Source: Scyliorhinus canicula
Lineage: Eukaryota
Direction: 5' to 3'
Length of the DNA: 64,000 nucleotides
NCBI RefSeq assembly: GCF_902713615.1
Contig: NC_052147.1
Location: forward strand, 166,822,410 to 166,886,409
Shown: piece after piece, positions 8,267 to 63,415 of the stretch
Layout: every line of letters starts with the position of its first letter
Position numbering within the stretch: position 1 is the first letter of the stretch
The notes under the pieces: model-generated
Told to the model about the DNA's origin: nothing
Database searches by the model: none
Seen by the model: only the letters and a program-made list of their open reading frames with translations
Made by a program: the position numbers and the translations under genes

Positions 8267-9772
8267 ATAGAACATAGAACACAGAACATTACAGCGCAGA
8301 ACAGGCCCTTCGGCCCTCAATGTTGCGCCAACCTGTGAAACCCCTCTAAAGCCTATCTACAGTATTCCCTTATCGTCCATATGCCTATCCAATGACCATT
8401 TGAATGCGTTTAGTGTTGGCGAGTCCACTACTGTTGCAGGCAGGGCATTCCACGCCCTTACTACTCTCTGAGTAAAGAACCTACCTCTGACATCTGTCCT
8501 ATATCTTTCTCCCCTCAATTTAAAGCTATGTCCCCGCGTCCTGGATATCACCATCCGAGGAAAAAGGCTCTCAATGTCCACCCTATCTAATCCTCTGATC
8601 ATCTTGTATGCCTCAATTAAGTCACCTCTTAACCTTCTTCTCTCTAACGAAAACAGCCTCAAGTCCTTCAGTCTTTCCTCATAAGGTCTTCCCTCCATAC
8701 CAGGCAACATCCTTGTAAATCTCCTCTGTACCCTTTCCAATGCTTCCACATCCTTCCTATAATGCGGCAACCAGAACTACACGCAATACTCCAAATGTGG
8801 CCGCACGAGAGTTTTGTACAACTGCAACATGACCTCAGGGCTCCGAAACTCAATTCCTCTACCAATAAAAGCTAACACACCGTACGCCTTCTTAACAACC
8901 CTCTCAACCTGGGTGGCAACTTTCAGGGATCTATGGACATGGACACCGAAATCTCTCTGCTCATCCACACTACCAAGAATCTTACCATTAGCCCAGTACT
9001 CTGTTGTCCTGTTATTCCTTCCAAAATGAATCACCTCACACTTTTCTGCATTAAATTCCATTTGCCACCTGTCAGCCCAGCTCTGCAGCTTATCTATGTC
9101 CCTCTGTAACTTGTAACATCCTTCTGCAGTGTCCACAACACCACCGACTTTAGTGTCATCTGCAAATTTACTCACCCATCCTTCTACGCCCTCCTCCAGG
9201 TCATTTATAAAAATGACAAACACCAGCGGCCCCAAAACAGATCCTTGTGGTACACCACTAGTAACTGGACACCAGTCTGAACATTTCCCATCAACCACCA
9301 CCCTTTGTCTCCTTCCAGCTAGCCAATTTCTGATCCAAACTGCTAAATCACCCTGAATCCCATGCCTCCATATTTCCTGCAATAGCCTACCGTGGGGAAC
9401 CTTATCAAACGCTTTACTGAAATCCATGTACACCACATCAACTGCTTTACCCACATCCACCTGTTTGGTCACCTTCTCGAAGAACTCAATAAGGTGTGTG
9501 AGGCACGACCTACCCTTCACAAAACCATGTTGACTATCTCTAATCAAATTATTCCTTTCCAGATGATTATACACCCTATCTCTTATAAACCATTCCAAGA
9601 CTTTGCCCACAACAGAAGTAAGGCTCAGTGGTCTATAGTTACCGGGGTTTTCTCTACTCCCCTTCTTGAACAAGGAGTTTTCCTCTCCAGCCGATGCATC
9701 CTAAGTCTTGCCTCATCGCATCATAATTGCCTTTTCCCCAGATATGACTCTTGTCTTGCGATATATACCTAT
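8267..9772 (-). mobile_element. CR1 LINE fragment (RT domain and 3' tail) inserted antisense in L1 ORF2
   Basis: ORF 8777-9673(-) has NYRP.SLTS, QHGF, DFSKAFDKV, GVPQGSVLGP and FADD; microsatellite tail at 8267-8290. Confidence 0.92.
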
Positions 9773-23687: not shown

Positions 23688-24723
23688 ATGAGGCCCCACG
23701 TGTACAGCAACCGCATGACGTTTGAGGACCTTCCGGACCGGATATGCAGATGAAAACTGCGGATGAGCAGAGGGATAGTGCGACAGATATGCCAGATGAT
23801 GGTACACCTGGCACCGCAGGGGTATGGGGGAGGAGACCTGATCCCAGTGGCCGTCAAGGTGACGGTCGTGCTGAACGTCAGTGCTACGGGGTCGTTCTCG
23901 TCGCAGAGTGGGGACCTGTCTGGGATTTCGCAGATATTGGTGCACAGGTGCATCCACGCCATCATGGAGACGCTATCTGCCAAGGCGGACCAGTACATCC
24001 AGTACGATGTGGACCACGTCCACCAGGATGCCAGGGCAGTGGGGTTCACTGCCGTCGCCAGGATGCCCTGGGTCGAGGGGATGGTCGACGGGATGTAGGT
24101 CGCCCTACGGCCACCTGCGGATAACAGGACACTATATACAAACAGGAAGGGCTACCACTCCATGAACATACAGCTGGTGTGCGACCAACAGACACGCATC
24201 ATGCACATCTGCACCCCATACCCGGGCAGCATGCACGACTCCTTCATACTGGCACACTAGGTGATCCCCGACATGTTCGCAGGGCACCCCCCCGGATGCA
24301 GGGCTGGCTGCTGGGCAACAGGGGTCACCCATTGCGGTCTCGGCTGATGACGTCTATCCGGAGGCGATTGACCGACGTGGAGACCCGCTACAACGACGCC
24401 CATTCAGCAACCGGGGTGTGGTCAAGCGGTGCTTCGGAGTCCTGAAGATGCGCTTCAGGTGCGTAGACAGCTCTGGAGGGCCCCTCCAGTACGTGTCTAG
24501 GAGGATCGCCTGGATCATGGTGGCGTGCTGCATCCTCCATAATATAGCCCAGCAGAGGGGGCGATGTGCTGAAGGAGGATGAGGAGGAAGGGCAGGCCTC
24601 GTCCGAAGAGGAAGATGTGGAGAGGGGAACAATGAGCGGGACATGGGGCCCGGGCAGGCACGGAAGGCTGCACAACGCCATTGCCAGGGCCAGAGCGCAC
24701 GGTACTCCCTTGTCGCCTCATAA
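23688..24723 (+). pseudogene. Harbinger (HARBI1-like) DDE transposase pseudogene, N-terminus lost
   Basis: ATGSF..SGDLSGISQ..VHRCI, GMVDG, NRKGYHSMNIQLVCD, YPGSMHDSFIL, GWLLGN.G.PL, YNDAH and CFGVLKMRFRC motifs, with internal stops and frameshifts. Confidence 0.88.
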
Positions 24724-25262
24724 TTGACCGACAAGGAGGGGGAGGGGGGTTGCTGGACAGGGACATGGACACCATCATCCCAGATGGTACAGCAGGAGTG
24801 GAGGTAGCCTGCTGTGACTCCTGCCCTGCAACAAGGGTTCCCGCTGGCGCAAATATCCAAGGGAAACCCGGTCTGGATGGGCCTGGCTACTGCTTGGGCA
24901 TAGTGGGTGGCGTGGTGCTGCCCTGTTCTGCCCACTGCTCACCAGATGCACCGGGGACAGGAGGGGGGCAGTCCGAGGTGCTGCGCTGTTCCGGCACCTC
25001 CCCTGCGGGGGTCTTTTCTCCCTCGCGGTGCCTGATGACCCCCGGGCTACTCCATGGGACGGGGCTGCAAGCGGAGCCACCCCCTGAGGCCTACGCCTGC
25101 AGGTGCTGGAAGCCGCCGTCATCCCCTCCTGTTGTCCCTGGGTCTCTGACTGCATCTGCACTGTGGCTGGGACTGGATTTTCCAGGAGCCGGGGACCCGT
25201 CTGGGCGGCAGCTGGTTCCTGGGGCCGGGCTGCCCTCCGACCATCCGGCCTCTCGGCTGCTC

Positions 25263-26535
25263 CTACCTCCACCTGCTGTACCGGATGCAATGTGTGGTGC
25301 TCACCAGTGAGTGTCCCAAGAACCTCTCCACTAAATTGCCAAACCGAGGTGGTGATCTCTGAGATGGGGAGGGTGCTGGAGACAGCTGTGACGGAAAGTC
25401 AATGTCCTCATCCGACCTGAACTCCGGAGTCTCCTGAGTCTTGGGCAGAGGGATTGTGTTCAGGCTGCTCGTCCCATCAGTGCTCTGCCATTGGTGGGGC
25501 ACCGGCTCTGGCACTCGCTAGGGGCAGGGGGCAACGGATCGATCGGCCCCATCTCCGGCAGGTCCTGTAACACACAGGATGTCATGTATGCTGAGAGAGC
25601 GAGACGGAGGTGTCGTTGGGGGGGAGGGTATTTTTTTGGGTGGTGAGGGGGTGTGGGTTGTGGCGGGTGAGGGGGGTGTGGGTTGCGGGGGGTGAGGGGG
25701 GTGTGGGTTGCGGGGGGTGAGGGGAGTGTGGGTTGCGGGGGGTGAGGGGAGTGTGGGTTGTGGGTGGTGAGGGGGTGTGCGTTGCGGGGGGTGAGTTTGT
25801 TGTGGATTACGGAGGATTGGGGGGTGTGGGTTGCGGGGGGGTGAGGGGAGTGTGTGGGGGGAGGAGTTGGTGTCCACACATGTGTCATGGGGATCCGCAA
25901 CTAAGCAGGGTCTCACTTGCTTGCCCGTCACCGACCTCCGCCTCGGCGACCTCCCTTTCCTCCGTGCCAGTGACCATGTCTAGTGCCCTCTGCTCAGGTA
26001 ATGGTGATGGGCCGAGGTGTGGTGGCCCCCCTTCTCCCCCTCCCGGCGGTTTTGCATGGCCTTCTCCTGGGGGCAGGGGTCAAACTCAAGCACAACATTG
26101 TTAGACAGTCCGACACATGCAACCCTGGGGTTGGGTAGATGATGGCATCGATGACCAGGGCACCCGGCCATTGAAGCTGGCATGGGTGCTGCTATGTGGG
26201 GAAAGGTGGGGGTTAGGTTGTCCCTGAGAGGGAAGGGGCCGAGTTACGGGTGTGTAGGGGGGGCAGGGTTAGTGCCAGGGGCACAGCGCTGCCTACTCAC
26301 CCTGGCCGCCCTGAGAGGGGTCGTGCAGGTTCTTCCTGCACTTGAGGCCAGTCTGGATGATGTTGCCCATGGTGCTGACAGTGTCTGCCACCTGCGCCCA
26401 GGCACGGTGAATGGCGGCGCCTCGTGGCCTTCCTCCGGGGACAGGATACAGGGTCATCCGCCTCTCCTCCGCGGCGTCCATGAGGGTGTCCAGCTCAGCG
26501 TTCCTGAACCGTGGAGCTGCTCTCCTTCCAGCCAC
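25263..26535 (-). pseudogene. Harbinger Myb/SANT-like gene, spliced (exon 1 26535-26301, exon 2 26066-25917, exon 3 from 25564; lower end uncertain)
   Basis: RAAPRF..ELDTLMDA.EERR..L...AWAQVA..V...KCRK.LHD, then EKA.QNRRE..K.GG. GTGAG donors and CAG acceptors. Start codon is GTG and there is a frameshift near the end of exon 1. Confidence 0.75.
25620..25862 (+). repeat. G-rich minisatellite (~23-bp unit GGGGGTGAGGGG(G/A)GTGTGGGTTG) in Myb intron 2
   Basis: Directly visible tandem units. Confidence 0.85.
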
Positions 26536-26807
26536 CTTGTTGAGTTGGACGGTGTGTGTGGGGCGATGGATCGTTTAAGTGCAGCTACAGCGTATGAGTC
26601 TCATGTGCGCCAATCACGGACCCGATGAATCCGGCGCCGTTTCACTTTGAACCGGTTGCGGTCCACGTGGCGATGGTGCTAGCCCATTGAGAGTTGCTGA
26701 ATCGTACACCTGTTGCGTCGTTTTTGCTGTCATAAAACACCACTGTTCCCACTCCAGCGTCAGCACTTAGTCTCAAAATCAGAGAATCCAGCCCAATATC
26801 TTTTCTT

Positions 26808-27373
26808 TGGCGATTCTCCGGCCCGCGATTGGCTGAAGTCCCGCCGCTGTCAGTCCTCTCCCGCTGACGTGGTTTAAACCAACTCTGCTGCAGGAGGGAG
26901 CAGGCGGTGTGAGCGGGCCCCGGGGTCCTGGGGGCGGCACGGGTGATCGGACCCCGGGGGGGTGCCCCCACGGTGGCCTCGCCCACGATCGGAGCCCACC
27001 GATCGGCGGGCGGGCCTGTGCTGTGGGGCACTCTTTTTCTTCCGCTTTCGCCATGGTCTTCACCATGGCGGAGGCGGTAGAGACCCCCTCCACCGCGCAT
27101 GCGCCTGTGGTGATGTCAGCGGCCGCAGACGCTCCGGCGCATGCGCAGACTCACGCCGAATGGCGAAGGCCTTTTGGCCAGCCCCGACGCCGGTCGTCGT
27201 GGCGCCAAAGGCCGTTGGCTCCAGTTGGCGGAGCGCGAGCCACTCCGGCGTGGGCCTAGACCCTAAAGGTGCGGAGAATTCCGCACCTTTGGGGAGGCCC
27301 GACGCCGGAGTGGTTCTCGCCACTCCAGTACACCGGGACCTCCCGCCCCGCCGGGTGGGGGAGAATCCCGGCC
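26808..27373. mobile_element. GC-rich Harbinger-related MITE, left end truncated
   Basis: Right end GGAGAATCCCGGCC resembles the Harbinger TIR. Long internal hairpin at ~27240-27313 centred on AAAGGTGCGGA-GAAT-TCCGCACCTTT. Confidence 0.7.
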
Positions 27374-28262
27374 AAGGTCAGAAGTGGGGATGTTTGCGGA
27401 TCACTGCACAATGTTCAGCACCATTCGAGACTCCTCAGATAATGAAGCAGGCCATGTTCAAGTGCAGCAAGACCTGGATAATATGCAGGTTTGGGTTGAC
27501 AAGTCAAGTGGCAAGTTACATTCGCGCCACACAAGTGCCAGGCAACGAACATCTACTACAAGAGAGGATATAACCATCACCCCATAACATTCAATGCCAT
27601 TACCATCGCTGCATCCCCCTCAATCAACATCCTGGGGGTTACCATTGATCAGAAACTGAACTGGACTAGCCATATGAATACTGTGGCAACCAGAGCAGAT
27701 CAAAGGCTAGGAATCCTACGGCGGACAACTTGCCTATTGAACCCCCCTCCCCAATGCCTGTCCACCATCTACAAGGCACAAGTCAGGAGTGTGATGGAAT
27801 ACTCTCCAATTGCCTGGGTGAGTGAAGATCCAACAACACGCAAGAAGCTCAACACCATCCAGGACAAAGCAGCCCGCTTGATTGCTCCCCCTTCCACCAC
27901 AGCCAAACCCTCCACCACAGACTAACAGTGGCAGCCCTGTGAACCATCTTCAAGATGCACTGCAATAACTCACTGGGGTTCCTTAAAGAGCAACTTCGAA
28001 ACCCACGACTAATACTATCTAGAAGGACAAGAGTAGCAGATACCTGGGAACACCACCACCTGGAAGTTCCCCTTCAAGTAACTCACCACCTGACTTGGAA
28101 TTCCTTCACTTTCACTGGGGCAAAATCCTGGAGCTCCCTCCCGAACAACACATGGGTGTACCGCAGCGGTTCAAGTAGGCAACTCCCCACCAGCAACTAA
28201 GGATGGGCAATAAATGCTGGCCTAACCAGCGATTCCCACATCCCATAGGTGAATAAAAAAAT
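27374..28262 (+). mobile_element. CR1-supergroup LINE 3' fragment (cassette copy 2)
   Basis: MFADHCTMF, YKAQVRSVMEYS; paralogous to ~13520-14395. Confidence 0.75.
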
Positions 28263-32330: not shown

Positions 32331-33299
32331 CCAGTACATAAGAGAGTTGAGATCAGATGTACACAAAGATATGTGCTGACACTCAATGGCACCCGGCATT
32401 ATAGAAAAGTCCAGAATCCTGAGAAAACCTTGTTCTCACTCGACCTGCTTATCTTTGCTATGTCAGAAGGAGATGAATTTGCATAGAGAGCCTCATCATG
32501 CAAATTCCATAATGTTGCTTACATATCCAGGAGCTCCATTAAGTGAACCTATAACTCTAGCCATCTTGACAACCACAGGCAATGTGATCCTTGACCTAAC
32601 AGGAGTTTAGAAAGGAAATCAGAGCAGAAGTTGACCATTTAACCCCTCAAGCATGCACCGCCATTCATCCAGTCCATGGCTGATCTTCTCTCTCAATGCT
32701 GTTTTCCTGCATTTTCCCCATATCTCTGATATCTTTAATATCTAGATGTTATCAATCACTGTCTTGAACATATTCAATGACTGAGACTTCACAGCCCTCG
32801 GAAGTAGCGAATTCCAAAGAGTGAAAGAAATCATCTCAATCTCAATTTCATGACTATTATTTTGCTTCAGATAATTTGAGTGAATCCTTGCCATTGGTTC
32901 AATATTATTTCCTTGGGATATCTGGCATATTTACCTCTTCCTGTTCTGTAAAAGTATCAATATTTAGCTGCCACCTCCTCCTTCTTATTATTGACAACAT
33001 CAATAATCAGTTTTCAAGGGTTCACAATCCTCTTGAACAATATAATTTCCCCCAAAATAAATATCGTCTTTTTGTTCCGAACTGGCTATCCTTTGCAAAT
33101 TAGTTTTCAGAATTATTTTTTTGTAGCTTATCTGTTTTGTCACATTTGCTTTTCCTTGTATCTTTCTGTAGTGATCTGAATATCTGTATGTGGGGTTAAT
33201 GTTTTGAAGTAACAGCTAAGTAATCACTAGATGGCAGCACTAGAGATGGGTATAAAAGACAGTCTCAAAACGAGTTCCCACCTCCCACCTCCCACCTCC

Positions 33300-33785
33300 A
33301 GCGGAGATTCACACGGATAATCCCAGGAATGGTAGGCCTAACATGTGATGAGCGTCTGAGGATCGTGGGATTATATTCATTGGAGTTTAGGAGGTTGAGG
33401 GGAGATCTAATAGAAACGTACAAGATAATGAATGGCTTGGATAGGATGGACGTAGGGAAGTTGTTTCCATTAGCAGGGGAGACTAGGACGCGGGGGCACA
33501 GCCTTAGAATAAAAGGGAGTCACTTTAGAACAGAGATGAGGAGAAATTTCTTCAGCCAGAGAGTGGTAGGTAAGTGGAATTCGTTGCCACAGAGGGCGGT
33601 GGAGGCCGGGACATTGAGTGTCTTTAAGACAGAAATTGATAAATTCTTGATTTCTCGAGGAATTAAGGGCTATGGGGAGAGAGCGGGTAAATGGAGTTGA
33701 AATCAACCATGATTGAATGGTGGAGTGGACTCGATGGGCCGAATGGCCTTACTTCCACTGCTATGTCTTATGGTCTTATGGTCTT
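33300..33785 (+). mobile_element. 5'-truncated CR1 in the Gypsy 5' LTR
   Basis: ORF 33329-33700 GLYSLEFRRLRGDLIE..FFSQRVV..WNSLP; (TATGGTCT)n tail; (CCCACCT)3 at the 5' junction. Confidence 0.9.
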
Positions 33786-34109
33786 TGTGGATATAGTGAC
33801 GAGTAACCAGAGGTAGACCAAGATAGCTCAGAGTGCAGGTGTGGTTAATCATACTTAATATATATTTAATCTTATTTATTTAATCTCCAGTTTAGTTGTT
33901 GAAGAGAGAACAAACTCACAATATATTTGTTAGCGCTACTTTATAAATAATTTGCTTGAACTGGAAGAGTTCGAGTGTTAATGAACATCGAAGACAGGAT
34001 CATCCTGGTAAGAAGCAAATGAATAACATATATTACACACGGTAATATAACATGGTACCAGGTTATTGACTTCAAGAAAATTTACTAGATTAGATTAGAA
34101 TCAGCAAGA

Positions 34110-37100
34110 GAAAAAAAATTGTATGGACTATTTGACACGGGAAGGCTTCGCAGCATTCAGGTGCCTCAAAGACAAATCACCTCGACGGACCACGTTCAAG
34201 CTCCATGTCAACTGAAAACTACCGGTAATCTAAACTCAAATTGGAAACTATCCAAACAGCAATTCCAAATCTATCTAGAAGCACATGATCTTACCACTGC
34301 TACTGAGGCTAGGAAAATAGCCCTGCATTTGTCCATGGCAGGACAGCAGGCTATAGAAATATATAACTCTTTCATTTACTCGAAAGGGGTTGGACAAAAG
34401 CAAATTTAATTTGATAATCGCCAAATTTGACGACCAATGCAAAACACAGACAAATGAAATCTTTGAGAGGCATTTTAACAAACATTTGCAAAAACATGAG
34501 GAATTGTTCACCAGCTTTGTCACTGATTTATAATTACTAGCACAAACTTGTAACTCCGCAGATTGCATGAGCCGCTGATCCGGGATCAGATAGTGTAAGG
34601 AATATGTGATGAGAGTCTAAGGGAAGCATTGTTATGTCAGCAAGATTTAACGCTGAAGTATTTATTTCCCGAAAAGAGTAAAAATCAATATCTTGAATTT
34701 TATCATCGTGAAAAAGGTGCGAAAGTCAACCACGAGGTCTAGAGTGTTAAAATGGTGTCGCAGGCAGTAAAGAAGCACGTTTCGGATGACAGCTAGCTTA
34801 CGCGCGCACACTCCAACCCGGGACATACGCACTCCGCTCAAAAATGCGAGACTGAAGAAAAGAAGTCTGTGCATGCGCGAATGTATCTCATACGTCAGGG
34901 AGACAATGTCATCACATGTTACCGATGTGGCAACGCCCACTTAAAATGGCACAAGGCAAAAAAACTTTAAAGTTTGGAAAACTCAATTACTATGCTTCAC
35001 AATGCAGATCTACAGCGCAATATCAACCTCCGACAGCAAAACAAAAGAACGTCAATGTTGGCAGTGTGGATTCATCGGAGCAGAACAAATCTGAACAAAA
35101 TTATTCATCCAAAGAGGATCATTTTTCCTTAGAAAACACGTTTTTCATGGGAATAATTGAAAAGAGTGAAGAACCTCAAGCAATAACCAACCCTCCTCAA
35201 CAGGTCAACATGATCAACTCAGGGCAGCACAGTGGCCTAGTGGTTAGCACAACCGCCTCACGGCGCTGAGGTCCCAGGTTCGATCCCGGCTCTGGGTCAC
35301 TGTCCGTGTGGAGTTTGCACTTTCTCCCCGTGTCTGCGTGGGTTTCACCCCCACAACCCAAAAATGTGCAGAGTAGGTGGATTGGCCACGCTAAATTGCC
35401 CCTTAATTGGAAAAAATAATTGGGTAATCTAAATTTAAAAAAAAAACATGCTCAACTCCAACAGTGAATGGACTTCAACAGTGCAAGTTAACAATTTTCC
35501 AGTATTATTCAAGCTTGAAACTGGGGCTTCAGCCAATCTACTGTCAAACAAAGATCTCAATATGATTCCAGGAGAACATGAGATGCTACCTGCTGCATGT
35601 AGGCTGAAAGACTACAATGGCAACCAGATCGCTTCAAGAGGATCGTGCCATCTTCAAGTCACAAACAAGAAGACACTACGATTTGAGATAGTGGAGAACG
35701 AGAAATTATCACTGTCAGGCGCTCAGGCTTGTGGAGACTTATGGCTTGTTCAATGAATCTATATGAATACTCAGGATACTTCACACGTGGAAGCTGAAAT
35801 CCAGCAGATACTTCATAAATATCCTGATATATTTAAAGGTATGGCTACTTTACCTTATCAGTACAAGGTTCTACTGAAAAAAGATGTAAAACATGTAATT
35901 CATCTACCTGAATGGGTTCGTGCTCCTTTGCGAGAGAGGTTGAAACTCGAACTTGACCGACTACAATCACAAGGAATCATCTCTCGATTCACACCACCGA
36001 CTGACTGGGTCAGCTCTCTAGTATGTGTCAAGAAATCATCTGGAGATCTTCGAAACTGCATAGATCCAAAGAATCTGAACAAAAATATTCGTAGGGAACC
36101 CATTATCCCATCCCTAAGCGTGAAGATATCACATGTAATGAGCCAATGCTCGAATCTTCACGAAACTCAAAACTTCTCAGGGATTCTGGAAGATGCAGCT
36201 TGACGACTCATACAGGTTATTGTGCACTTTCAATACTCCATTTGGATGCTTCTGCTCTTCCGCATGTCCTTTGGGATAATATCCGCTTCAGAGATTTTCC
36301 ATAGGATAATGGAGCAGATGACAGAGGGTATCAATGGTGTAAGAGTCTACGTCAAAGACATAATCATCTGATCCACGACTGAAGAAGAACACATTTGTCA
36401 TTTGAACATGGTGTTTCAAAGAGTCCATAAGTTTGGATTGAAACTAAACCAATCAAAGTGTACATTTGCACAAGCATAGTTAAACTTCTTGGGAGGTACC
36501 ATATCCAGTCAAGGTGTCAGGCCAGATGATGCGAAGATTTCTGCAATCCAGAATATGAAAACGCCCCAGGATAAAAAGGCTGTGCGAAGATTTCTGGGCT
36601 TTGTAAACTTCTAGGGCAAGTTTATCTTGAACCTGTCCATGAGGACGTCAGCTTTACACAATTTGATAAGGATGACCACCAACTTTAAATGGACACAAAG
36701 TCACCATATTATTAATGGGTGGATCTCAAGCATCAACTAATGACTGCACCAATTCTTGCTTTTTCAACCCAACTAGAGCAACCAAGATACCCACTGATGA
36801 AAGTCAGGGTGGAATCGGCGCAGTTCTTTTACAGCAAGACGACCAATCTGATTGGGTTCCTGCTGCATATGCTTCAAGGGCTATGACTGCAACAGAAAGC
36901 AGATATACACAGGTAGAAAAGGAATGTCTCGGGTTACTCACGGGAATACTGAAATTCCATGACTATGTGTATGGGCTTCCAACCTTTATAGTGGAAACGG
37001 ATCACGGGCCGTTGGTCCACATCATTGAGAAGAATTTAAATTACATGACTCCTCGCCTACAGTGCATCATGATGAAATTAAGGAGGTATGATTTCAACTT

Positions 37101-38480
37101 GGTATACACTGCGGGAAAAGATCTCATCATTGCTAATACGTTATCCAGATCAATTGACACAGAAAGTTCACCACCAGAATTTATTAGAGACATCGAGGCT
37201 CAAACGCAGTTATGCGCGGAGAATCTTCCGGCATCTGAAGAGACGCTACAACTGATTGGTCAAGAAACAAAGAAAGATGCAACCTTGCTAAGGGTGATGC
37301 ACCATTTCCAGCATAATTGGCCAAAGGGACAATGTCTACAATATCAAAACATTCAGACCGAGATAAAAGTAGTTGATGGGCTATTTTTACGAAATGACAA
37401 AATAGTAATTCCACTGAGTCTGTGCTCTGAGATGCTACACAAGATTCACAAGGGACATCTCGGAATTGGGAAATGTAAGAGGAGAGCATGACAAACAGTT
37501 TACTGGCCTGGCATCAACACAAAGATAACTGACATGGTCATGACATGTGATACCTGTCGGAAGCATCAACCTGTACAGTGTAAAGAGACACTTCAGCAAC
37601 ATGAGCTAACAACGTCACTACGGACAAAAGAAGGCATCGATCTGTTCCATGCTAGTGGTCGTGACTACGTTCTCATCATGGACTACTACTCAAACTTTCC
37701 GGAGGTTATGAAACTTCCTGATCTTACTTCTTCATCTGTCATAAAGGCTTTTTTCACGACATGGGATTCCGCACACTGTAATGTTCGATGTTTCGCGAAT
37801 TGGGAATGGACAGAGGTTTCAAATAACTACAACTTTTGTCATGTGACATCTAGTCCACACTACTCCCAACCCAATGGGAAAGCTGGAAACTGTTTTCACA
37901 TCATCAAACAACTTATCAGTAAAGTGAATGATTAACAATCTGACATACACTTGGCTTTGTTATCGTACCGAGCAATTCCATTAAGCTCAGGACTGTCACC
38001 AGCTCAAATGCTTTTTAACAGAGACAGCCGAACAACTTTACCTGCAATACAACTCAAAGATCCTGATCACTTGTATGTTCTCAACAAAATCAAAGAACAA
38101 TGTTCTAAACAGTGACAATGCTATGATCAGCACGCGATCAAGCTCAAACCCACTGACAAAAGATGAGACTGTCAAACTAAGAAATCCAGAGGGAGGATGG
38201 TCTGCTCTAGCCACTGTATTCAGGCAAACAGCACTGCGATCCTACATCGCCAAATCAGCTGAGGGGGCGATTTTTTGACGCAAATGGCAAGATCTACTGA
38301 AGAGTCGACTTCAATCACCAGATTTCCTACATTGAATCTAAATGAGCCACTCATTCGACAAAATTTACTTCACAGCAAGACAACAGACGGCGTTCACAAT
38401 GGCATTAAAATATCCACATCACCACTTCAACAGTTATAAAAGTCTAATAAAAGAAGAAAGAAACCCAACCGACTCAATTT
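34110..38480 (+). pseudogene. Gypsy gag-pol pseudogene
   Basis: Gag N-terminus (GNLNSNWK..KQQFQIYL), zinc knuckle CYRCGNAH at ~34917, protease LETGA (catalytic D to E), RT YVKD (from YVDD), RNase H and integrase; many stops. Confidence 0.9.
35221..35444 (+). mobile_element. Short poly(A)-tailed HE1-like SINE with 14-bp TSD
   Basis: TSD AACATG(A/C)TCAACTC at 35207-35220 and 35445-35458; nearly identical to 11812-12037. Confidence 0.9.
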
Positions 38481-38735
38481 ATAAATATTGGACTCTAAAA
38501 TGATACTTGACTTTGTATAATTATCAATATTGTCATAACTTGTACAGTTATACACATCCTTATTTATATTTTCCTGTTGTACAATTTTCTTTAACCAGTT
38601 CAGAAAATGTGTCAAAAAAAGGGGGATGTAGTAATCTACACACCTGTATGTATACAACGGGTAATGTTTAGAAGTAACAACTAAGTAATCCCTAGATGGC
38701 AGCATGAGAGTTGGTTAGAAAAGGCAGACTTGACA

Positions 38736-52627: not shown

Positions 52628-52822
52628 AATCCTACCCATGTTTACAATAGGGTAATTATATTAGATGATTTCAACTTTCCTAACATTAATTGGGATCATC
52701 ACCGTGTTAAGGGCTTAGATGGAGTGCAGGTCTTAAAATGTATACATGCTAACTTTTTAGCTCAAAATGAAGAGGGTCCATCAAGGGATGGTACAGTGCT
52801 GGATCTCATTCTGGGGAATGAA

Positions 52823-52997
52823 ATTAAATGAAAATCGCTTATTGTCATGAGTAGGCTTCAATGAAGTTACTGTGAAAAGCCCCTAGTCACCACATTCCGG
52901 CGCCTGTTCGGGGATGTTGGTATGGGAATTGAACTGTGCTGCTGGCCTGGCTTGGTCTGCTTTAAAAGCCAGCGATTTAGCACAGTGAGCTAAACCA
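52823..52997 (-). mobile_element. Short tRNA-derived SINE with (CATTT)n tail (third family)
   Basis: TSD GGAATGAA (52815-52822, 52998-53005); same 3' end as the fragment at 56062-56130. Confidence 0.7.
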
Positions 52998-53739: not shown

Positions 53740-55617
53740 GATGAATACTTCATTTTTGGCTTCAACCAAGAGATTGAGGAGATAGTATAGAAATCAAGCA
53801 GAGAGACTGTATGGCTCTTGAGCAAATTATCAGAGGGAGTAACAAGGTATTGGAGGTGTTGGCAGGCTTAAAAGTGGATAACTCTCCAGGCCTGGATGTA
53901 TCCCAGGATGCTGTGGGAAGCAAGGGAGGAGATTGCAGAGGCTTTGATCCAAATTTTGAATTGTCTGTGGCCTCGGGGGAGGTGCCAGAGGACTGGAGAA
54001 CAGTTAATGTGGTCCAATTATTTAAGAAAGGTTGTAGAGATAAGCTAGGGAACTACAGACCAGTGAGTCTCACATCAGTGGTTGGCAAACTATTGGAGAG
54101 GTTTCTGAAGGAGAGAATCTACCTCCACTTGGAGAGGCAAGGTTCGATCAGGAATAGTCAGCATGGCTTTGGAAGCGGGAGGTCATGCCGAACAAACTCG
54201 ATAACATTTTCTGAGCATGTGACCAGGTGTGTAGATGAGGGGAGTGTTGTTGATGTAATTTATGTGGATTTCAGCAAAGCCTTTGACAAAGTCCCAAATA
54301 AGAGACTTATAAAGAATGCAAATGCATATGGGATACTGGGTAACTTGATAGGGTGGATTCAAAATTGGCTCAGTTGTAGGAGACAGAGGATGATGACAGA
54401 TGACGGTTTTAGTGACTGGAAGTCCGTGTCCAGTGGTGTAACTCAGGGATCTGTGATGGGGCCCCTATTGTTTGCTATTTATCGAAATGACATAGATGAC
54501 TATGTGGGGGTAGGATCAGTAAGTTTACAGATGATGCAAAGATTGGTTGGGTGGTTCACAGTGAGGTTGAGTGTCTTGGGTTACAGGAAGATATAGATGG
54601 TCAAATGGGCAGAAAAGTGGCAGATGGAAAGTGTGAGGCGATAAACTTTGGACGAGTAATTTGACAAGGAAGTATTCAATGAATGGCATGAGAAGTTCCG
54701 AAGAACAAAGGGATCTTGGCGTGTTTTTCCAGGTTAATAGGTTGGTGAAAATGGCATAAGGGACACTTGCCTTTATCAATCGAGGCATAGATTACAAAAG
54801 CAGGGAGTGCTTTTGTTATGCTCTAAGCGTTATTCTCTAAGCGTAGCATAAGCGGCTTCCTTGTGGTACACTTGACAAAGGAAGGTTCAGACATGGAGAT
54901 AACTTCAACACATTTATTAAACTATTTACACTTCTATTACTCGGGTTCAACACTACTGTTAATCCTTCTATAGCTACCCAGACTGACTAACCAGTCTGCT
55001 ACAATCCACGTGGTGGGAGTGATATTGAATCAACCCTGTGTCTGTACTCACTGACTGTCTCCACTGGAAAGAGGCCAATTATGTGTGTGGTGTCCTTTAT
55101 ATATGGGTTGGTGTAATGCCCTCCTGTGGTCGTGTCACCTCTGTGTGTATCGTGAATGCCCACTGGTCGTGTCCTATCTAACTGTTCTATTAGCTGAGTG
55201 TGTGTGTGTGATGTCTCTGGTGCTCCCTCTAGTGTCTAGATAGTCTACATGTATTTACATTAGCCCCTTGTGTATTTACAGTGATGCACATCACCACATC
55301 CCCCTTTTTTATATGTTACATATTTTCTGTACACTTAAAGAAAATTGAACAAAAAAACAGGCAGATAAGTTATGGTATGTACAAGTCAGGAAAACTGTGA
55401 TTCAACAATAAGTACAAATCATTTGTGTGAGTCCAAAAATCATCAATCATCATGGACAAATGTCAATCTTGGTGGGTTGGTGAATATGATGGTGACATGT
55501 TCTTATGAATGCCATCAGTGTCCCTGTGCCACAGGAACCAAGAAGTGGTCAAATCACTTCACTGTCTGATTTGGGGTCCCTTTTATTTCGATGTTTGTGA
55601 TAGTGATGTTGGATGGC

Positions 55618-56283
55618 ATCTTGTAGGTGACAAGTTGTTGACGTTGAAGATGTACCATCAACAGTATCATTGGAGGTCATGTATGTGCCATATGTTGAAG
55701 TTGGATAATTCTGTGCATACTGGTTCTGGCCAAATGCTGTGTAGGAAGGGTGATGCTGATGAGAACTGTTGAAGTTCGACGAATTGGAAACAGAATTGCT
55801 CCTCGCATAAATACCGGGTGAGAGTGTGAAACTAGAACCTTGCATCTGATAGGAATATGCCATTTGGCCAGGCTGGGGTGCAGCAAATCCTGGGCTGTAA
55901 CTAAGGCATCCAGTCTGCAGAGCAGATTGTGCTTGCAGTAGTCCTCCTTCGGTCTTGATTCCATAAGTGGGCAATCCGTAGTGCTGGCCTGTTTGAGAAT
56001 ATGCTGCAAAGAGTGCTGGCTGCTGCATTCCTGAATACTGGGTTTGTCCAGCATAAGCTGTCAGGGGCTTTTCACAATAACTTCATTTGAAGCCTACTTG
56101 TGACAATAAGCGATTTTCATTTCATTTCATTGACTGCACTGCTGGTGTGGAAAGAATGTGTGGGTATGGCTTAGAAGGATATAGCTGTGGTGAATATTGG
56201 TGTATTCCTCTTGGACTGTAGCCACTACTTATTATTACTGACCCAGTGTAATTGTCAAGTGATCCATCTCCTGTCATCGTCGT
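55618..56283 (-). pseudogene. EYA4: Intronless fragment of eyes absent homolog 4 (N-terminal P/S/T/Y-rich transactivation region), interrupted by a 66-bp SINE tail
   Basis: [148 protein letters not shown] matches vertebrate EYA4 as I recall it. The HAD phosphatase domain is absent. Confidence 0.9.
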
Positions 56284-56349
56284 CACCCTGAGCGTGCCGT
56301 CACTGAGTTTGCAGCACTCCCTGTCTGGAGAAAAGTCCGGCTTACGTGA

Positions 56350-57010
56350 ATCAGAGTTGGCGTTTGGTTGCTCTCCACTTGGAGTCTGGTCTGTTTCACC
56401 TGAGTCAGTGTTGGTTTGTCGATGCTCCTCGTATGGAGTCTGGTTTGTGTCACCTGAGTCAGTTGTAGTTTGTCAGTGCTCCCCGTCCGGAGGCATAGCA
56501 GGTTCACTGGAGTCATCTGAGATTTCTTGAAGCTGCACGTCTGGAGTCAGAACATGCAGGAATGCATTGACTTGTGGAAAGGTTCGAGCGAATGAGGTTG
56601 GAAGTAACGTGGTGTCACCGGAGTCACCAGTGGTCTCACAGTGATTGTCGTGTGCCTCTGTACACACTAGCTGAGGTCTGTCACATTGCACATCTTGCAT
56701 GGGAAGTGGGATGCTGTCGTCACTCGTCTCACATACAGTGGATAGAGCCTCATTTCATTTTTCATTTCAGTAGCTTCTTGTTGTTCATTTGGGCTGGGTA
56801 AACTGTCAGAGTCTTCTCCTTGTGGCTCAGATAATGTGGGTGGACCGTCATAGTCGCTTTGTTGTTCATTTGGGCTTGGACTGTCATAATCGCTTTGTTC
56901 TTCACTGGAGCATGATAGACCGTCATGGTCGTCCTGCTGTGCACTGGTGTGTGATAGACTGTCATAGTCTTCTTGCTGTTTACTTGAGCATGGCAAACTT
57001 GCATAGTCTG
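56350..57010 (-). repeat. Coding tandem repeats (~39-bp EQQ.DYD.LP units and 54-bp TDSG.T.QTP..EHRQT units)
   Basis: Visible in ORFs 56667-57323(-) and 56473-56700(-) and in their readthrough. Confidence 0.7.
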
Positions 57011-57153
57011 CTGCTACTTGGTCAGAGGAGGTTGCTAGACCCTCATGGTCTTGTTCCTGCAAGGACTGCGCTTTGGAGACTTGCGTTTCTGCAATCGTGG
57101 AGTCTGTCCACGAGCTCGGTGTGGAGGCCTGTGACACTGGAGTCACTTCTTGT

Positions 57154-57444
57154 TCATGCAAGGACTGCGGTGTGGAGTCTGTTTTCCTCAAAGTATTTAC
57201 CGAATTTATCCAGGACTGCCTGGAAGTTGCTCCTGTTTTGCCTTTTGGAGAACTTGAACGTTTTAAAGATTTCTTCTGCTCTGGCACCGGTGATGGTGAG
57301 CAGAAGCTCTGTCTTTTCAGCATTGGCCATGTCTTGTAGGTCGGCTGCTACCAGGAAGATTTGAAACCTTTTCCGGAATGCCCGCCAGTTTTCGCGGAGA
57401 TCTCCGTGGTACTGGAGCTGCTGCGGAACCGGGATCTCGAACAT
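57154..57444 (-). pseudogene. Gypsy Gag N-terminal fragment
   Basis: VPQQLQYHGDLRENWRAFRKRFQIFLVAADL..KTELLLTITG..AEEIFKTF is homologous to the Gag at 34119-34409; ATG ~80 bp from the 5' LTR end. Confidence 0.82.
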
Positions 57445-58344
57445 CCCGCCTGGGTATTATTGCTGGTTGTCACTGTACGCTGAGTTTTAGCTATATGGAT
57501 TTGAACAGTTCACTCTGGTACCATGTCTTGTTGTGCTCTAAGCGTAGCATAAGCAGCTTCCTTCTGATGCACTTGACAAAGGAAGGTTCAGACGTGGAGA
57601 TAACTTCAACACATTTATTAAACTATTTACACGTCTATTACTCGGGTTCGACACTACTGTTAATCCTTCTATAGCTACTCAGACTGACTAACCAGTCTGC
57701 TACAATCCACGTGGTGGGAGTGATATTGAATCAACCCTGTGTCTGTACTCACTGAGTGTCTCCACTGGAAAGAGGAAGATCATGTGTGTGGTGTCCTTTA
57801 TATATGGGTTGGTGTAATGCCCTCCTGTGGTCGTGTCACCTCTGTGTGTATCGTGAATGCCCATTGGTTGTGCCCTATCTAACTGTTCTATTGGTTGAGT
57901 GTGTGTGTGTGATGTCTCTGGTGCTCCCTCTAGTGTCTAGCTAGTCTACATGTATTTACATTAGCCCCTTGTGTATTTACAGTGATGCACATCACCACAG
58001 GAAGGTCATGTTGGTGTTGCCTAGAACTTTAGTGAGGCCAGAGCTGGAGTACTGTGTGCAATTCTGCTCGCCACACTGTGGGAAGGATGTGATTGCACTG
58101 GAGAGGGGGCAGAGGTGATTCACCAGGATGTTGCCTGGGATGGAACATTTACGTTATGAAGAGAGTTGGGTAGGCTTGAGTTGCTTTCACTGGAACAGAG
58201 AAGACTTTGGGGTGACCTGATCTAGGTTTTCAAGATTGACATGAGTAAGAACTTTTTTAAGCAGGGGTTACTAGGTTTCTGGAATTTGCTTCCCGAATGG
58301 TGGTGGAGGCAGAGATCCTAAACTCTTTAGAAAAGTACCATTCT

Positions 58345-61300
58345 TCCAGCGGAGCAGGCAGAGAGTGGAGCGATTTTTTGAGGGGAGAGATGAAAGGTAA
58401 GCTGAATTTTTGATTTTTAACTTACTTTTCGGAGCAGGAAACCGGAAGTCGGCCGTGGGGAGACCTGGGAAGGTTGTATTACCCAATAAATTTGAACAGT
58501 GAGGAAACCCGAGACACTACACGTGTAGTGTCTCCCACCCTCCCTCCTTCTCTAACCTAAAAAAAAAGACTCAGTGCTGTGAGCAGGTAAGTTATTTACG
58601 GTTTTTTTCTTTTTTGCTGGGAGACTAAGTAGAGGTGATGGCAGCTAGGACAGCGGAATGTTCCTCCTGCAGAATGTTTGAGGTAAGGGAGACCACCGGT
58701 GTCCTTGCTGACTTCACCTGCACGAAGTGCAGCCATCTCCAGCTCCTCACAGACCGTGTTAGGGGCCTGGAGCTGGAGCTCGATGAACTGAGGATCATTC
58801 GGGAAGCTGAGGGAGTGATAGATTGAAGCTCCAGGGACCAAGTTACACCTGAGAACAAAGGTAGCTGGGTAACAGTTAGAGATGGGAGGAGGAGGAAGCA
58901 GTCAGTGCAGGAATTCCCTGTGGTTGTTCCTCTCAACAATAAGTATATCGCTTTGGATACTGTTGGGGGGGGGGGGATTACCCAGCAGGGGTAGGCTGCA
59001 GTGACTGGGTCTCTGGCACGAGGTCCGGCTCTGGGGCTCAGAAGGGAAGGGGGGAGATTAGGAGAGCACTAGTTATAGGGGACTCAATAGTTAGAGGTAC
59101 AGACAGGCTGTTCTGTGGGCACGGGCGTGACTCTCGGATGGTTTGTTGCCTCCCGGGTGCCAGGGTCCATGACATCTCGGATTGTGACTTCAGGATCCTT
59201 AGGGGGGAGGGTGAGCAGCCAGAAGTCGTGGTGCACATTGGTATCAACGACGTAGGTAGGAAAAGGGGTGTGGCTGTAATAAACAAGTTTAGGGAGTTAG
59301 GCTGGAAGTTAAAAGCCAGGACGGACAGAGTTGTCATCTCTGGTTTGTTGCCGGTGCCATGTGATAGCGAGGCTAGGAATAGGGAGAGAGTGCAGTTGAA
59401 CAAGTGGCTGCAGGAATGGTGTAGCAGGGAGTGTTTCAAGTATTTGGATAATTGGAGTGCATTCTGGGGAAAGTGGGACCTGTACAGGCAGGACGGGTTG
59501 CATCTGAACCAGAGGGGCACAAATATCCTAGGAGGGAAGTTTTCTAGTACTCTTTGGGAGGGTTTAAACCAATTTGGCAGGGGAATCGGAACCAGATTCA
59601 TAGTCCAGCAATTAAGGGAGCTGATGTTCAGGACGCCAAAGCATGTAATGAGGCAGTGGGGAAGGTAACACTGACAAAGGAGAGTATTTGCAGGCATGGA
59701 GATGGGTTAAAGTGTGTATACTTCAACGCAAGAAGCATCAGGAATAAGGTGGGTGAACTTAAGGCATGGATCGGTACTTGGGACTACGATGTGGTGGCCA
59801 TCACGGAAACATGGATAGAAGAGGGGCAGAAATGGTTGTTGGAAGTTCCTGGTTATAGATGTTTCAATAAGATTCGGGAGGGTGGTAAAAGAGGTGGGGG
59901 CACTGCTAATTAGAGATAGTATAACAGAAAGGCAGTTTGAGGAGGATCTGCCTAACTGAGGTAGTATGGGTTGAAGTCAGAAATAGGAAAGGAGCAGTCA
60001 CCTTGTTGGGAGTTTTCTATAGATCCCCAATAGCAGCAGAGATGTGGAGGAACAGATTGGGAAACAGATTTTGGCGGTATGGGACAATTGGGCGCGGCCG
60101 TTTTGGCGCGGCCATTTGGACGCAGCCGTTTGGGCGCCATGGGACAATTGGGCGCAGCCAATTTGGCGCGGCCGTTTGGGCGTAGACGACAGAATTTTTT
60201 TTAGTTTTTGTGGCTAGTAAATTGTTGCAAGTAAATTGTTGCAAGATTCAGTATCATTCGAAGGAAGGACTTAAAAGCAAGCTTAAAACTGTAAATTAAA
60301 AGATGAGCTTTAAAAAGTTTTTAAACTAACTTTACTGTAAATTAAAAACCTTAAATTAGTTCATTTAGTTAAAAACCTTAAATTAGTTCATTTAGTTTAG
60401 TTCATTTGGTAATTATGAGCAAGGCTCCTCAAGTACTCGATAGCATCCATGTTTTCAAATTTAAGAACAGTTTCATGTATTCTTTTATCTGCATCTCTAT
60501 ACTTTTTTAGTTTTTGTGGCGGTTCATGGCCGGCTAGTAACCTTTCATAATATGCATCTCTACCTTTCTGTACTTTACGCAGGCCATCAATTAGTTTCCA
60601 TATGGTGGGATGATGTATGCCAAGTTCGTATTTCAATCGACGGTGGGCTGCCTCCGCATTATTGTTTGTGCGGTCTTCCTCGTTTAATGTTCTCTGACAA
60701 AGGTTCCAAATCTCAGGGCGAAATAAAGGTGTTCGTCTACCATTTCCAACGAAACACTTGTGACAGCGGACCCGCACCAGCAGCCAATTCAACTGAGGCT
60801 AATTTACAAATAAAGAAATGTTATTATGGCCAAAACGTCCGGCGCCAAAACGTCCGGCGCCAACACGGCTGGCGCCAAAACGGCTGGCGCCAAAACGGCC
60901 GCGCCACAACGGCCGCGCCCAAATGGCTGCGCCAAAACTTACCTAACCCGATTTTGGAAAGGTGCAGAAGTCACAGGGTAGTATTCATGAGGGACTTCAA
61001 CTTCCCAAATATTGAGTGGGAACTCTTTAGATCAAATAGTTTGGATGGGATGGTGTTTATGCAGTGTGTCCAGGAAGCTTTTCTAACACAGTATGTAGAT
61101 TGTCCGACAAGAGGGGAGGCCATATTGGATTTGGTACTTGGCAATGAACCAGGGCAAGTGATAGATTTGTTAGTGGGGGAGCATTTTGGAGATAGTGACC
61201 ACCATTCTGCGACTTTCACTTTAGTAATGGAGAGGGATAGGTGCGTGCAACAGGGCAATGTTTACAATCGGGGGAAGGGTAAATACGATGCTGTCAGACA

Positions 61301-63415
61301 AGAACTGAAGTGCACAAGTCGGGAACATAGGCTGTCAGGGAAGGACACAATTGAAAAGTGGAACTTGTTCAAGGAACAGATACTACGTGTCCTTGATATG
61401 TATGTCAGGCAGGGAAGAGATGGTCAAGTGAGGCAGCCATGGTTGACAAGAGAGATTGAATGTCTTGTTAAGAGGAAGAAGGATACTTATGTAAGGCTGA
61501 GGAAACAACAGGGCATTGGAGGGATACAAGATAGCCAGGAGGGAATTGTAGAAAGGGATTAGGAGAGCTAAGGGAGGGCATGAAATATCTTTGGCGGGTA
61601 GAATCAAGGAAAACCCCAAGGCCTTTTACACATATGTGAGAAGTATGAGAATGACTAGAGCGAGGGTAGGTCCAATCAAGGACAGTAGTGGGAGATTGTG
61701 TATTGAGTCTGAAGAGATAGGAGAGGTCTTGAACGAGTACTTTTCTTCAGTATTTACGAATGTGAGGGGCCATATTGTTGGAGAGGACAGTGTGAAACAG
61801 ACTGGTAAGTTTGAGGAGATACTTGTTAGGAAGGAAGAAGTGTTGGGCATTTTGAAAAACTTGAGGATAGACAAGTCCCCCGGGCTTGACGGGATATATC
61901 CAAGGATTCTATGGGAAGCAAGAGATTAAATTGCAGAGCCGTTGGTAATGACCTTTTCGTCCTCACTGTCAACAGGGGTGGTACCAGGGGATTGGAGAGT
62001 GGCAAAAGTCATGCCCCTGTTCATAAAAGGGAATAGGTATCATCCTGGGAATTATAGGCAAGTTAATCTGACTTCGGTGGTAGGAAAAGTAATGGAAAGG
62101 GTACTGAGAGATAGGATTTCTAAGCATCTGGAAAGACACTGCTTGATTAGGGATAGTCAGCACGGATTTGTGAAGGGTAGGTCTTGCCTCACAAGTCTTA
62201 CTGAATTCTTTGAGGAGGTGACCAAGTACGTGGATAAAGGTAAAGCAGTGGATGTAGTGTACCTGGATTTTAGTAAGGCCTTTGATAAGGTTCCCCATGG
62301 TAGGCTTATGCAGAAAGTAAGGAGGCATGGGATAGTGGGGAATTTTGTCAGTTGGATAACCAACTGGCTAACCGATAGAAGTCAGAGGGTGGTGGTGGAT
62401 GGCAAATATTCAGCCTGGAGCCCAGTTACCAGTGGCATACTGCAGGTATCAGTTCTGGGTCCTCTGCTGTTTGTGATTTTCATTAATGACTTGGATGAGG
62501 GAGTTGAAGGGTGGGTCACTAAATTTGCAGACGATACGAAGATTGGTGGAGTTGTGGATAGTGAGGAGGGCTGTTGTCGGCTGCAAAGAGACATAGATAG
62601 GATGCAGAGCTGGGCTGAGAAGTGGCAGATGGAGTTTAACCCTGAAAAGTTTGAGGTTGTCCATTTTGGAAGGACAAATATGGATGCGGAATACAGGGTT
62701 AACGGTATGGTTCTTGGGAATGTGGAGGAGCAGAGAGATCTTGGGGTTTATGTTCATAGATCTTTGAAAGTGGATAGAGCTGTGCAGAAGGCCTATGGTG
62801 TGATAGCGTTCATTAGCAGAGGGATTAAATTTAAGAGCCATGAGGTGATGAGGCAGCTGAACAAAACCTTGGTAAGGCCACATTTGGAGTACTGTATGCA
62901 GTTCTGGTCACCTCATTTTAGGAAGGATGTGGAAGCTTTGGAAAAGGTGCAAAGGAGATTTATCAGGATGTTGCCTGTAATGGAGAGTAGGTCTTATGAA
63001 GAAATGTTGAGGGTGCTAGGCCTTTTCTCATTAGAACGGAGAAGGATGAGGGGCGACTTGATAGAGGTTTATAAGATGATCAGGAGAATAGATAGAGTAG
63101 ACAGTCAGAGACTTTTTCCTCGGGTGGAACAAACCATTGCAAGGGTTCATAAATTTGAGGTGAATGGTGGAAGATATAGGTGGGATGTCAGAGGTAGGTT
63201 CTTTACCCAGAGAGTGGTGGGGCATGGAATGCACTGCCTGTGGAAGTAGTTGAGCCAGAAACATTCGAGACCTTCAAGCGGCTATTGGATAGGTACATGG
63301 ATTACGGTAGAATGCTGGGGTGTAGATTGATTTGTTCATAATCTCGGACAAAAGTTTGGCACAACATCGTGGGCCGAAGGGTCTGTTCTGTGCTGTATTT
63401 TCTATGTTCTATGTT
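58345..63415 (+). mobile_element. Near full-length CR1 LINE: ORF1 (zinc finger, leucine zipper, SGNH esterase) and ORF2 (EN, RT), disabled
   Basis: CSSC..CTKC..L..RV..LE..LDEL, VIGDSIVR, DGLHLN; YFNARSIRNK, ITETW, SDH, FADD; tail TCTATGTTCTATGTT. Confidence 0.92.
60075..60949 (-). mobile_element. Internally deleted Mutator-like (MULE) DNA transposon with foldback-type subterminal repeats
   Basis: 8-bp TSD GATTTTGG (60067-60074, 60950-60957). Inverted arrays of ~15-bp GGCGCCAAAACGGC repeats. ORF 60397-60792(-) has PLFRPEIWN..RTNNNAE..H..L..HPTIWKLI, a MULE transposase C-terminus. Confidence 0.8.

Follow-up and report, generated by a model that had tools for sequence, protein, structure and literature searches.

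In a 64,000-nucleotide stretch of the genome of the catshark Scyliorhinus canicula (contig NC_052147.1, forward-strand positions 166,822,410 to 166,886,409; hereafter the window, in whose numbering positions are given), the minus strand from 57444 to 55549 resembles a retrotransposon Gag protein at one end and the protein EYA4 at the other, raising the question of how a piece of a host gene came to lie there and whether it served any purpose. An earlier note on this DNA had identified a Gag N-terminus, acidic repeats and an EYA4 segment in this interval, and had proposed that they once formed a single fusion protein that may have been translated and possibly selected for. The three parts are indeed where the note placed them, to within a few bases. 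By comparing the locus with its relatives, we arrive at a simpler view of its history: the region is very probably a dead copy of a non-autonomous catshark family of long terminal repeat (LTR) retrotransposons that carries a captured piece of eya4, most simply as a passenger. The window contains no N.

The interval forms the interior of a 3.2-kb LTR retrotransposon, located at 54808-57999 and read on the minus strand. The 5' LTR (57524-57999) starts with TG and ends with CA, both ends having been read directly, and the 3' LTR occupies 54808-55298. The two are direct repeats with 95.5% identity over 470 nt (57530-57999 versus 54829-55298), and in this copy only, ~14 nt close to the end of the 3' LTR are tandemly duplicated (54815-54844). 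A 5-bp target-site duplication, read directly on the minus strand, flanks the element: CTTCC at 58000-58004 and CTCCC at 54803-54807, which match at four of five positions. Immediately after the 5' LTR is a putative primer-binding site (57506-57523, minus strand) that begins with TGG; it occurs once in the window and is kept in all eight other copies that retain the region. A tRNA scan of the window for the primer tRNA found none. At the other end, a polypurine tract (55299-55310) adjoins the 3' LTR and is conserved in 11 of 11 copies. The untranslated 3' internal region lies beside it at 55311-55548, and its last ~100 nt align with gypsy-like 3' ends at 38440-38720 and 2020-2300. Within the 5' LTR, a TATA-like motif (57796-57804) and an AATAAA (57614-57619) were recognized, by eye only. 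An Rfam scan of the region from 50 to 64 kb returned nothing.

Neither the listing of open reading frames (ORFs) nor Pfam revealed a protease, reverse transcriptase (RT), RNase H or integrase between the LTRs, where the only retroelement protein is the Gag N-terminus. Thus, the locus has the paired LTRs with TG and CA ends and the target-site duplication that define an LTR retrotransposon structurally, but not the gag and pol genes of an autonomous one, and without protease, RT or integrase the element is non-autonomous. It was apparently inserted in a long interspersed nuclear element (LINE), as an RVT_1 ORF (53811-54596, plus strand) lies on one side and an ORF for a LINE-type RT tail (57969-58118, plus strand) on the opposite side.

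The EYA4-like piece is found at 55618-56283 on the minus strand. It is intronless and corresponds to approximately residues 110-308 of the 610-residue EYA4 of Scyliorhinus torazame, in the P/S/T-rich (proline, serine and threonine) N-terminal region. Compared with shark EYA4 proteins, the EYA part is 86-94% identical, with E values down to 1e-110; the corresponding match in the PDB is to EYA3 (E=2e-17), the only EYA N-terminal region in that database. Across the copies of the element described below, identity to S. torazame EYA4 is 89-95% over 184 codons, and the best matches are to EYA4, not to other paralogues. Both ends of the fragment fall inside the coding sequence. It starts within an alternatively spliced exon and spans an exon junction that is skipped by isoform X8. 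The piece follows EYA4 colinearly over an exon junction without any intron, and therefore came from a spliced mRNA. The C-terminal Eya (HAD phosphatase) domain lies outside the captured piece, whereas true EYA4 proteins have PF00702; Pfam scans gave nothing above noise, whether run on all five pieces into which the window copy falls or on long ORFs from the other loci.

To place this locus among its relatives, we assembled a comparison set of the window copy and ten further loci, seven from S. canicula (L001-L004 and L008-L010) and three from S. torazame (L005-L007). The copies were located through EYA4-like protein or gene models, and the sample of 11 is biased in that respect. Some Logan matches (P0007 and P0010-P0023) have an EYA4 of tetrapod type and may be human; these were left out of the comparison. 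Counting gene models, the family has at least 13 loci in the two species (in RefSeq, eight in S. canicula and five in S. torazame), and the S. canicula copies are distributed over at least six chromosomes. The 13 family loci in RefSeq (P0001-P0006, P0024-P0026, P0036, P0047, P0063 and P0161) bear the names 'eyes absent homolog 4-like', 'EYA4-like' or 'uncharacterized protein'. A literature search found no paper on this catshark family.

Taken at face value, these RefSeq models would make the loci true host eya4 paralogues that happen to lie beside retrotransposon debris. One of them, the 220-residue 'eyes absent homolog 4-like [Scyliorhinus canicula]', is 100% identical to the window by word search. 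We consider this explanation highly improbable. The piece is intronless, covers only about 200 of 610 residues and has no Eya domain, and in every copy it joins the same element sequence at constant junctions, between LTRs with target duplications. The window model itself treats a 66-nt insertion, the tail of a short interspersed nuclear element (SINE), as if it were an intron; some other models also splice around lesions. Above all, the LTR-to-LTR structure common to all copies contradicts the idea.

The internal junctions are identical in 11 of 11 copies, as would also be the case if a single chimeric pseudogene had been spread by segmental duplication at the DNA level instead of by retrotransposition. 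The boundaries and the distribution of the copies make such a history very unlikely. Homology between copies stops exactly at the LTR ends, and the flanks are unrelated apart from other repeats. Perfect 5-bp target-site duplications are present in three of the other copies (L005, L007 and L009), each of a different sequence, and the copies occupy the six or more S. canicula chromosomes noted above. Retrotransposition of an already chimeric element is the reading we retain. Identity between paired LTRs ranges from 90 to 96% across copies. The tree has long terminal and short internal branches and two subfamilies (support 0.997), each with copies from both species, indicating that diversification of the family preceded or roughly coincided with the separation of S. 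canicula from S. torazame. Together with the common junctions in 11 copies, the presence of both species in each subfamily argues for a single capture followed by amplification. When we looked for orthologous copies between the species, no common flanks were found within the sample. The family has also served as a target of later insertions: private insertions of ~370-510 nt are seen in the leader of L004 (L004:6279-6786), the 3' LTR of L003 (L003:5155-5524) and the 3' part of L009 (L009:5277-5654).

How does the window copy read as a coding sequence? On the minus strand, a Gag N-terminal ORF of 96 codons runs from the ATG at 57444 to 57154. Only 57444-57181 is family sequence; the last nine codons and the stop are read across a deletion scar. 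The acidic repeat region that follows (56770-57180, minus strand) is in another frame than the Gag ORF, and in other copies it lies in the family frame. It is native to the element and has a 39-nt period around 56903-56992. A third stretch, 56752-55549, is again in phase with the Gag ORF. This stretch contains the ATG at 56700, crosses one stop (56475-56473) and then continues uninterrupted into the EYA-type peptide from ~56283, just as the earlier note had described for the frame starting at 56700. The portion before EYA4 (56284-56752) consists of a unique middle stretch and then 54-nt repeats (56369-56484), element-native and in frame with EYA4. After the EYA4 piece comes a His/Lys-rich tail of 22 codons and a stop (55549-55617, minus strand).

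The interruptions of this frame are private to the window copy. The largest is a frame-shifting deletion scar between 57181 and 57180, where 759-885 nt are present in seven other copies. The deleted block, ~0.8 kb, comprises the remainder of a basic stretch linked to Gag and the first acidic stretch, and in full copies it is bordered by an imperfect 8-nt direct repeat. Copy L002 has an internal deletion (L002:3568) with the same left edge in the alignment as that of the window copy (57181) and a different right edge; the shared edge reflects either a deletion hotspot or alignment ambiguity. A frame-shifting insert of 17 nt at 56753-56769 is missing in nine of nine other copies that cover the site. 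The premature stop at 56473-56475 lies in a 54-nt unit found in four copies, the other three of which have a sense codon there. Finally, the 66-nt SINE-like repeat tail (56062-56127) lies on the plus strand, antisense to the element, and is absent in 10 of 10 other copies. It leaves the frame unchanged but introduces two in-frame stops within the EYA part. This block is a dispersed repeat, with 93% identity to 52817-52884 of the window and further occurrences in several of the fetched loci. We considered, and rejected, the possibility that the mRNA already contained it as an exonised SINE when captured, as all ten other copies lack it.

As only the window copy carries the SINE tail, the 17-nt insert and the TGA, these are late lesions, in agreement with the earlier note, which had taken the tail and a short insert at ~56752-56768 for late arrivals. 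The note had also put a further frame change near 57190. A break is there, but it is the scar of the large private deletion and not a point frameshift.

At the other end of the coding region, the 22-codon tail contains an A-run of variable length, beyond which 7 of 11 copies are in another frame. The run (55560-55585) lies just past the EYA4 piece, at the same site in all copies, and gives rise to recurrent frameshifts there; it might be left over from the capture. A proposed origin of the tail in the parent element was based on an eyeballed likeness to the end of protein P0163 and was rejected, as BLASTP gave it no support (E=4.6).

To reconstruct the ancestral frame, we laid the frame of L009 on the multiple alignment of the copies as a ruler. 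In L009 it spans 851 codons between the Gag start and the final stop, is free of frameshifts and contains two premature stops. Uninterrupted ORFs in phase with it persist in L006 (605 codons), L001 (512), L007 (447) and L004 (412). Premature stops lie at positions that vary by copy, with a single shared alignment column (L004 and L008). A frame in phase with the long ORFs of four copies, interrupted by scattered stops, indicates that the ancestor had one ORF of ~850 codons. Its order was Gag N-terminus, basic stretch, first acidic stretch, acidic repeats, unique stretch, 54-nt repeats, EYA4 and the 22-codon tail. The earlier proposal of a Gag-repeat-EYA4 fusion was therefore right as to a single open frame; its length of ~600 residues was an underestimate, as the private deletion of 759-885 nt at the Gag junction brings the ancestral ORF to ~850 codons. 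An alternative course, in which the Gag frame continued in another frame after the residues KYCEEN, was dropped because L008 and L009 hold one frame there. In the family, then, a host piece lies in the gag frame, although that frame is broken in the window copy itself, and 11 of 11 copies are broken or truncated.

Which parts of this ORF belong to the element, and which were captured? A search of 1.84 billion representatives with the 510 non-EYA residues of the 605-residue ORF returned only seven proteins, all from Scyliorhinus. Four belong to the retrotransposon family described here and three, 38-60% identical to the basic/acidic or repeat regions, are diverged relatives without EYA4; P0162 and P0163 are among the EYA4-less proteins. 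In one of the EYA4-less relatives the alignment ends ~25 residues before the EYA4 junction and gives way to unrelated protein sequence. P0163 matches the 56284-56752 region (37% identity, E=6e-17), and the match does not continue into EYA4. As the relatives of the non-EYA part are all from Scyliorhinus and some have no EYA4, the middle region is native to the catshark element lineage and only EYA4 was captured.

For the Gag N-terminus, the informative comparison was within the window: it is 39% identical over 64 residues (E=3e-11, searched against the window) to the first ORF (34119-34409) of a Ty3/gypsy-like element. The polypurine tract and the start of the LTR are also ~75% identical to those of this element, which has RT_RNaseH and aspartyl protease matches; the EYA4 element itself carries no pol by which to classify it. 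The relative is a degenerate Ty3/gypsy-like LTR element at 33194-38730 on the plus strand, which has, besides that ORF, protease-like (35448-35756), RNase H (36715-37491) and integrase-like (37534-37935) segments. It is the closest relative in the window of the Gag and termini of the EYA4 element, and it may come from the lineage that supplies enzymes in trans. The 3' end of a second gypsy-like copy, with polypurine tract and LTR start, lies at 2020-2300 on the plus strand and aligns with 38440-38720 and 55200-55480. Other approaches to the Gag piece gave nothing. A word search, a method blind to longer proteins, yielded no candidate, a PDB profile search with the Gag alignment gave nothing below E=0.09, and AlphaFold2 modelled the Gag/basic piece with a mean predicted local distance difference test score of 41, too poor to use.

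We asked if the captured piece had been kept for the protein it encodes. Over the 184 aligned codons there is one position at which most copies differ from S. torazame EYA4. Three other sharks match the copies at that position, which assigns the change to the host lineage of S. torazame. The copies have no amino-acid difference from host EYA4 in common, and private differences number 10-20 per copy. The lack of a common change suggests that amplification began soon after capture. With zero amino-acid change, the stem from capture to amplification has neither the length nor the power for a selection test.

For the changes among copies, omega was determined from two-state sites, classed as synonymous or not and split into private and shared, relative to the expectation of a mutation model. 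The model, which allows for transitions, transversions and CpG, was derived from the LTRs and other non-coding sequence; the counts were repeated in frames +1 and +2 as a control. Omega is 0.98 for Gag (1.22 and 0.97 in frames +1 and +2), 1.04 for the basic/acidic part (1.04 and 1.09) and 0.98 for the repeats (1.00 and 1.16). For EYA4 it is 0.68 (1.13 and 0.85), with an uncorrected p of 0.033 that is lost on correction for four segments. Within EYA4, omega is 0.69 for private and 0.62 for shared changes. Nonsense changes account for 18 of 393 singleton non-synonymous changes (4.6%, with 4.6-6.6% expected), which is the neutral rate; EYA4 has one such change where ~4.5 are expected. Plain pairwise ratios of non-synonymous to synonymous substitution (dN/dS, NG86) are 0.5-0.8 in all segments and were set aside as evidence, because the method ignores transition and CpG bias.

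The EYA4 omega is the only hint of selection on the fusion, and a weak one. It raises the alternative that a fusion protein was produced and had a role, either by helping the element, for example through the transactivation region of EYA4 acting in cis on the element's transcription or packaging, or because a copy was recruited by the host as a gene. The ~850-codon ancestral ORF was open through an in-frame fusion, ORFs of 400-600 codons persist in several copies, and EYA4 alone has a frame-specific deficit of non-synonymous changes as well as fewer singleton nonsense changes than expected. We nevertheless regard this alternative as unlikely. The p value does not survive the four-segment correction, omega is equal on private and shared changes, and omega is ~1 for the Gag and repeat segments within that ORF. 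No intact copy is present among the 11, and the captured piece has no Eya domain. An in-frame capture junction has a chance of about one in three without any selection. Moreover, the value of 0.68 is possibly an artefact, since sampling through EYA4-like models favours copies with a well-kept EYA4 part.

The specific proposal that the Gag/acidic-EYA4 fusion was translated and came under weak purifying selection while the family was active, aiding the element or becoming a host gene, is quite improbable. It is much more likely that the EYA4 piece is a passenger than that it was translated and selected. The suggestion that it was possibly selected for is thus not borne out: omega is ~1 outside EYA4, its reduction within EYA4 comes uncorrected from a biased sample, and there is no shared amino-acid change.

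Based on these observations, we suggest the following origin for the passenger. The parent would have been an element with Ty3/gypsy-type ends and a long native ORF that encoded a Gag N-terminus, a basic stretch and long acidic repeats. During reverse transcription in a virus-like particle, RT may have left the element RNA for a spliced eya4 mRNA packaged with it and then returned, so that EYA4 codons ~110-308 replaced part of the element. The 5' junction would have been in frame by chance, creating the single ORF of ~850 codons. The chimera retained its LTRs, putative primer-binding site and polypurine tract and went on to produce many copies on different chromosomes of the two species, presumably with the help of proteins from related autonomous elements. 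After insertion, each copy decayed, the window copy through the loss of ~0.8 kb, the 17-nt insert, the 66-nt SINE tail and one stop.

Several points weigh against this account. The EYA4 omega of 0.68 is specific to the frame, and a passenger model accounts for it only through sampling bias. Template switching is proposed from the anatomy of the element, not from microsimilarity at the two switch points, which is the hallmark of the process. The autonomous partner element is only inferred. The Gag label, in turn, depends on a single relative in the window; nothing came from Pfam, the word search, the PDB profile or structure prediction.

The rest of the window holds further repeats. A LINE at 59138-63249 on the plus strand includes a GDSL-esterase-like ORF (59138-59668), an endonuclease ORF (60516-61562) and an RVT_1 ORF (61942-63249). 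Another RVT_1 ORF lies at 8777-9673 on the minus strand. The stretch 24001-28000 is rich in G+C (0.59-0.63, compared with ~0.42 elsewhere), and a tandem repeat at 60069-60188 consists of two copies of a 60-nt G+C-rich unit with 83% identity.

The family provides a vertebrate example of a retrotransposon that captured a piece of a developmental regulator in frame and then multiplied, leaving two catshark genomes each with several 'EYA4-like' loci. It demonstrates LTR-mediated exon shuffling in cartilaginous fishes. It also carries a practical warning: fragments borne by transposons that RefSeq lists as eya4-like genes can mislead counts of shark gene families and analyses of expression. Because amplification appears to have started early after capture, the family amounts to a dated natural experiment on the rate at which a captured coding piece decays. 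Should the weak constraint on EYA4 prove genuine, the family would be one of the rare instances in which a transposon makes use of a host domain.

Related captures are known from plants and from viruses. The maize element Bs1 is a non-autonomous LTR element that combines fragments of several genes, and a hybrid protein is reported to be expressed from it. Compared by description only, Bs1 and the catshark element both have host fragments fused to element coding sequence and were mobile after capture; the catshark element differs in carrying one captured animal gene and in being known here from its sequence alone. In acutely transforming retroviruses with gag-onc fusions, a Gag N-terminus and a host cDNA lie between LTRs, and the viruses are replication-defective and helper-dependent. 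The order of LTR, Gag N-terminus, in-frame host cDNA fragment and LTR is the same in the catshark element, which is likewise replication-defective and presumably dependent on a helper. In contrast to these viruses, it gives no indication of env or of infectivity, what it captured is a disordered transactivation region and not a growth-signalling domain, and it forms a germline family rather than a somatic pathogen.

The anatomy of the element matches that of LTR-mediated retrocopies, in which RT changes template twice, between element RNA and an mRNA packaged alongside it; the resulting chimera can be mobilized once more, as a 'pseudo-LTR retrotransposon' (Tan et al., 2016; PMC5131818). Like these retrocopies, the catshark chimera has a partial, intronless piece of a host mRNA with element sequence on both sides inside one LTR pair, and no insertion signature of the poly(A) type; retrocopies of this kind, too, are often in frame (PMC5131818). 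In most of the animal cases reported there is a single locus, and more than one insertion site is described for two retrocopies of Drosophila (Tan et al., 2016), whereas the catshark chimera became a family with at least 13 loci across two species. As summarized in the same paper, HERV-K captured a fragment of FAM8A1 mRNA that is now a processed pseudogene (Jamain et al., 2001, cited in PMC5131818). By that description, both cases join a vertebrate LTR element to a fragment of a host mRNA, and the HERV-K case is a single locus. The catshark EYA4 element is a new example of LTR-mediated retroposition, or of a transducing element like Bs1.

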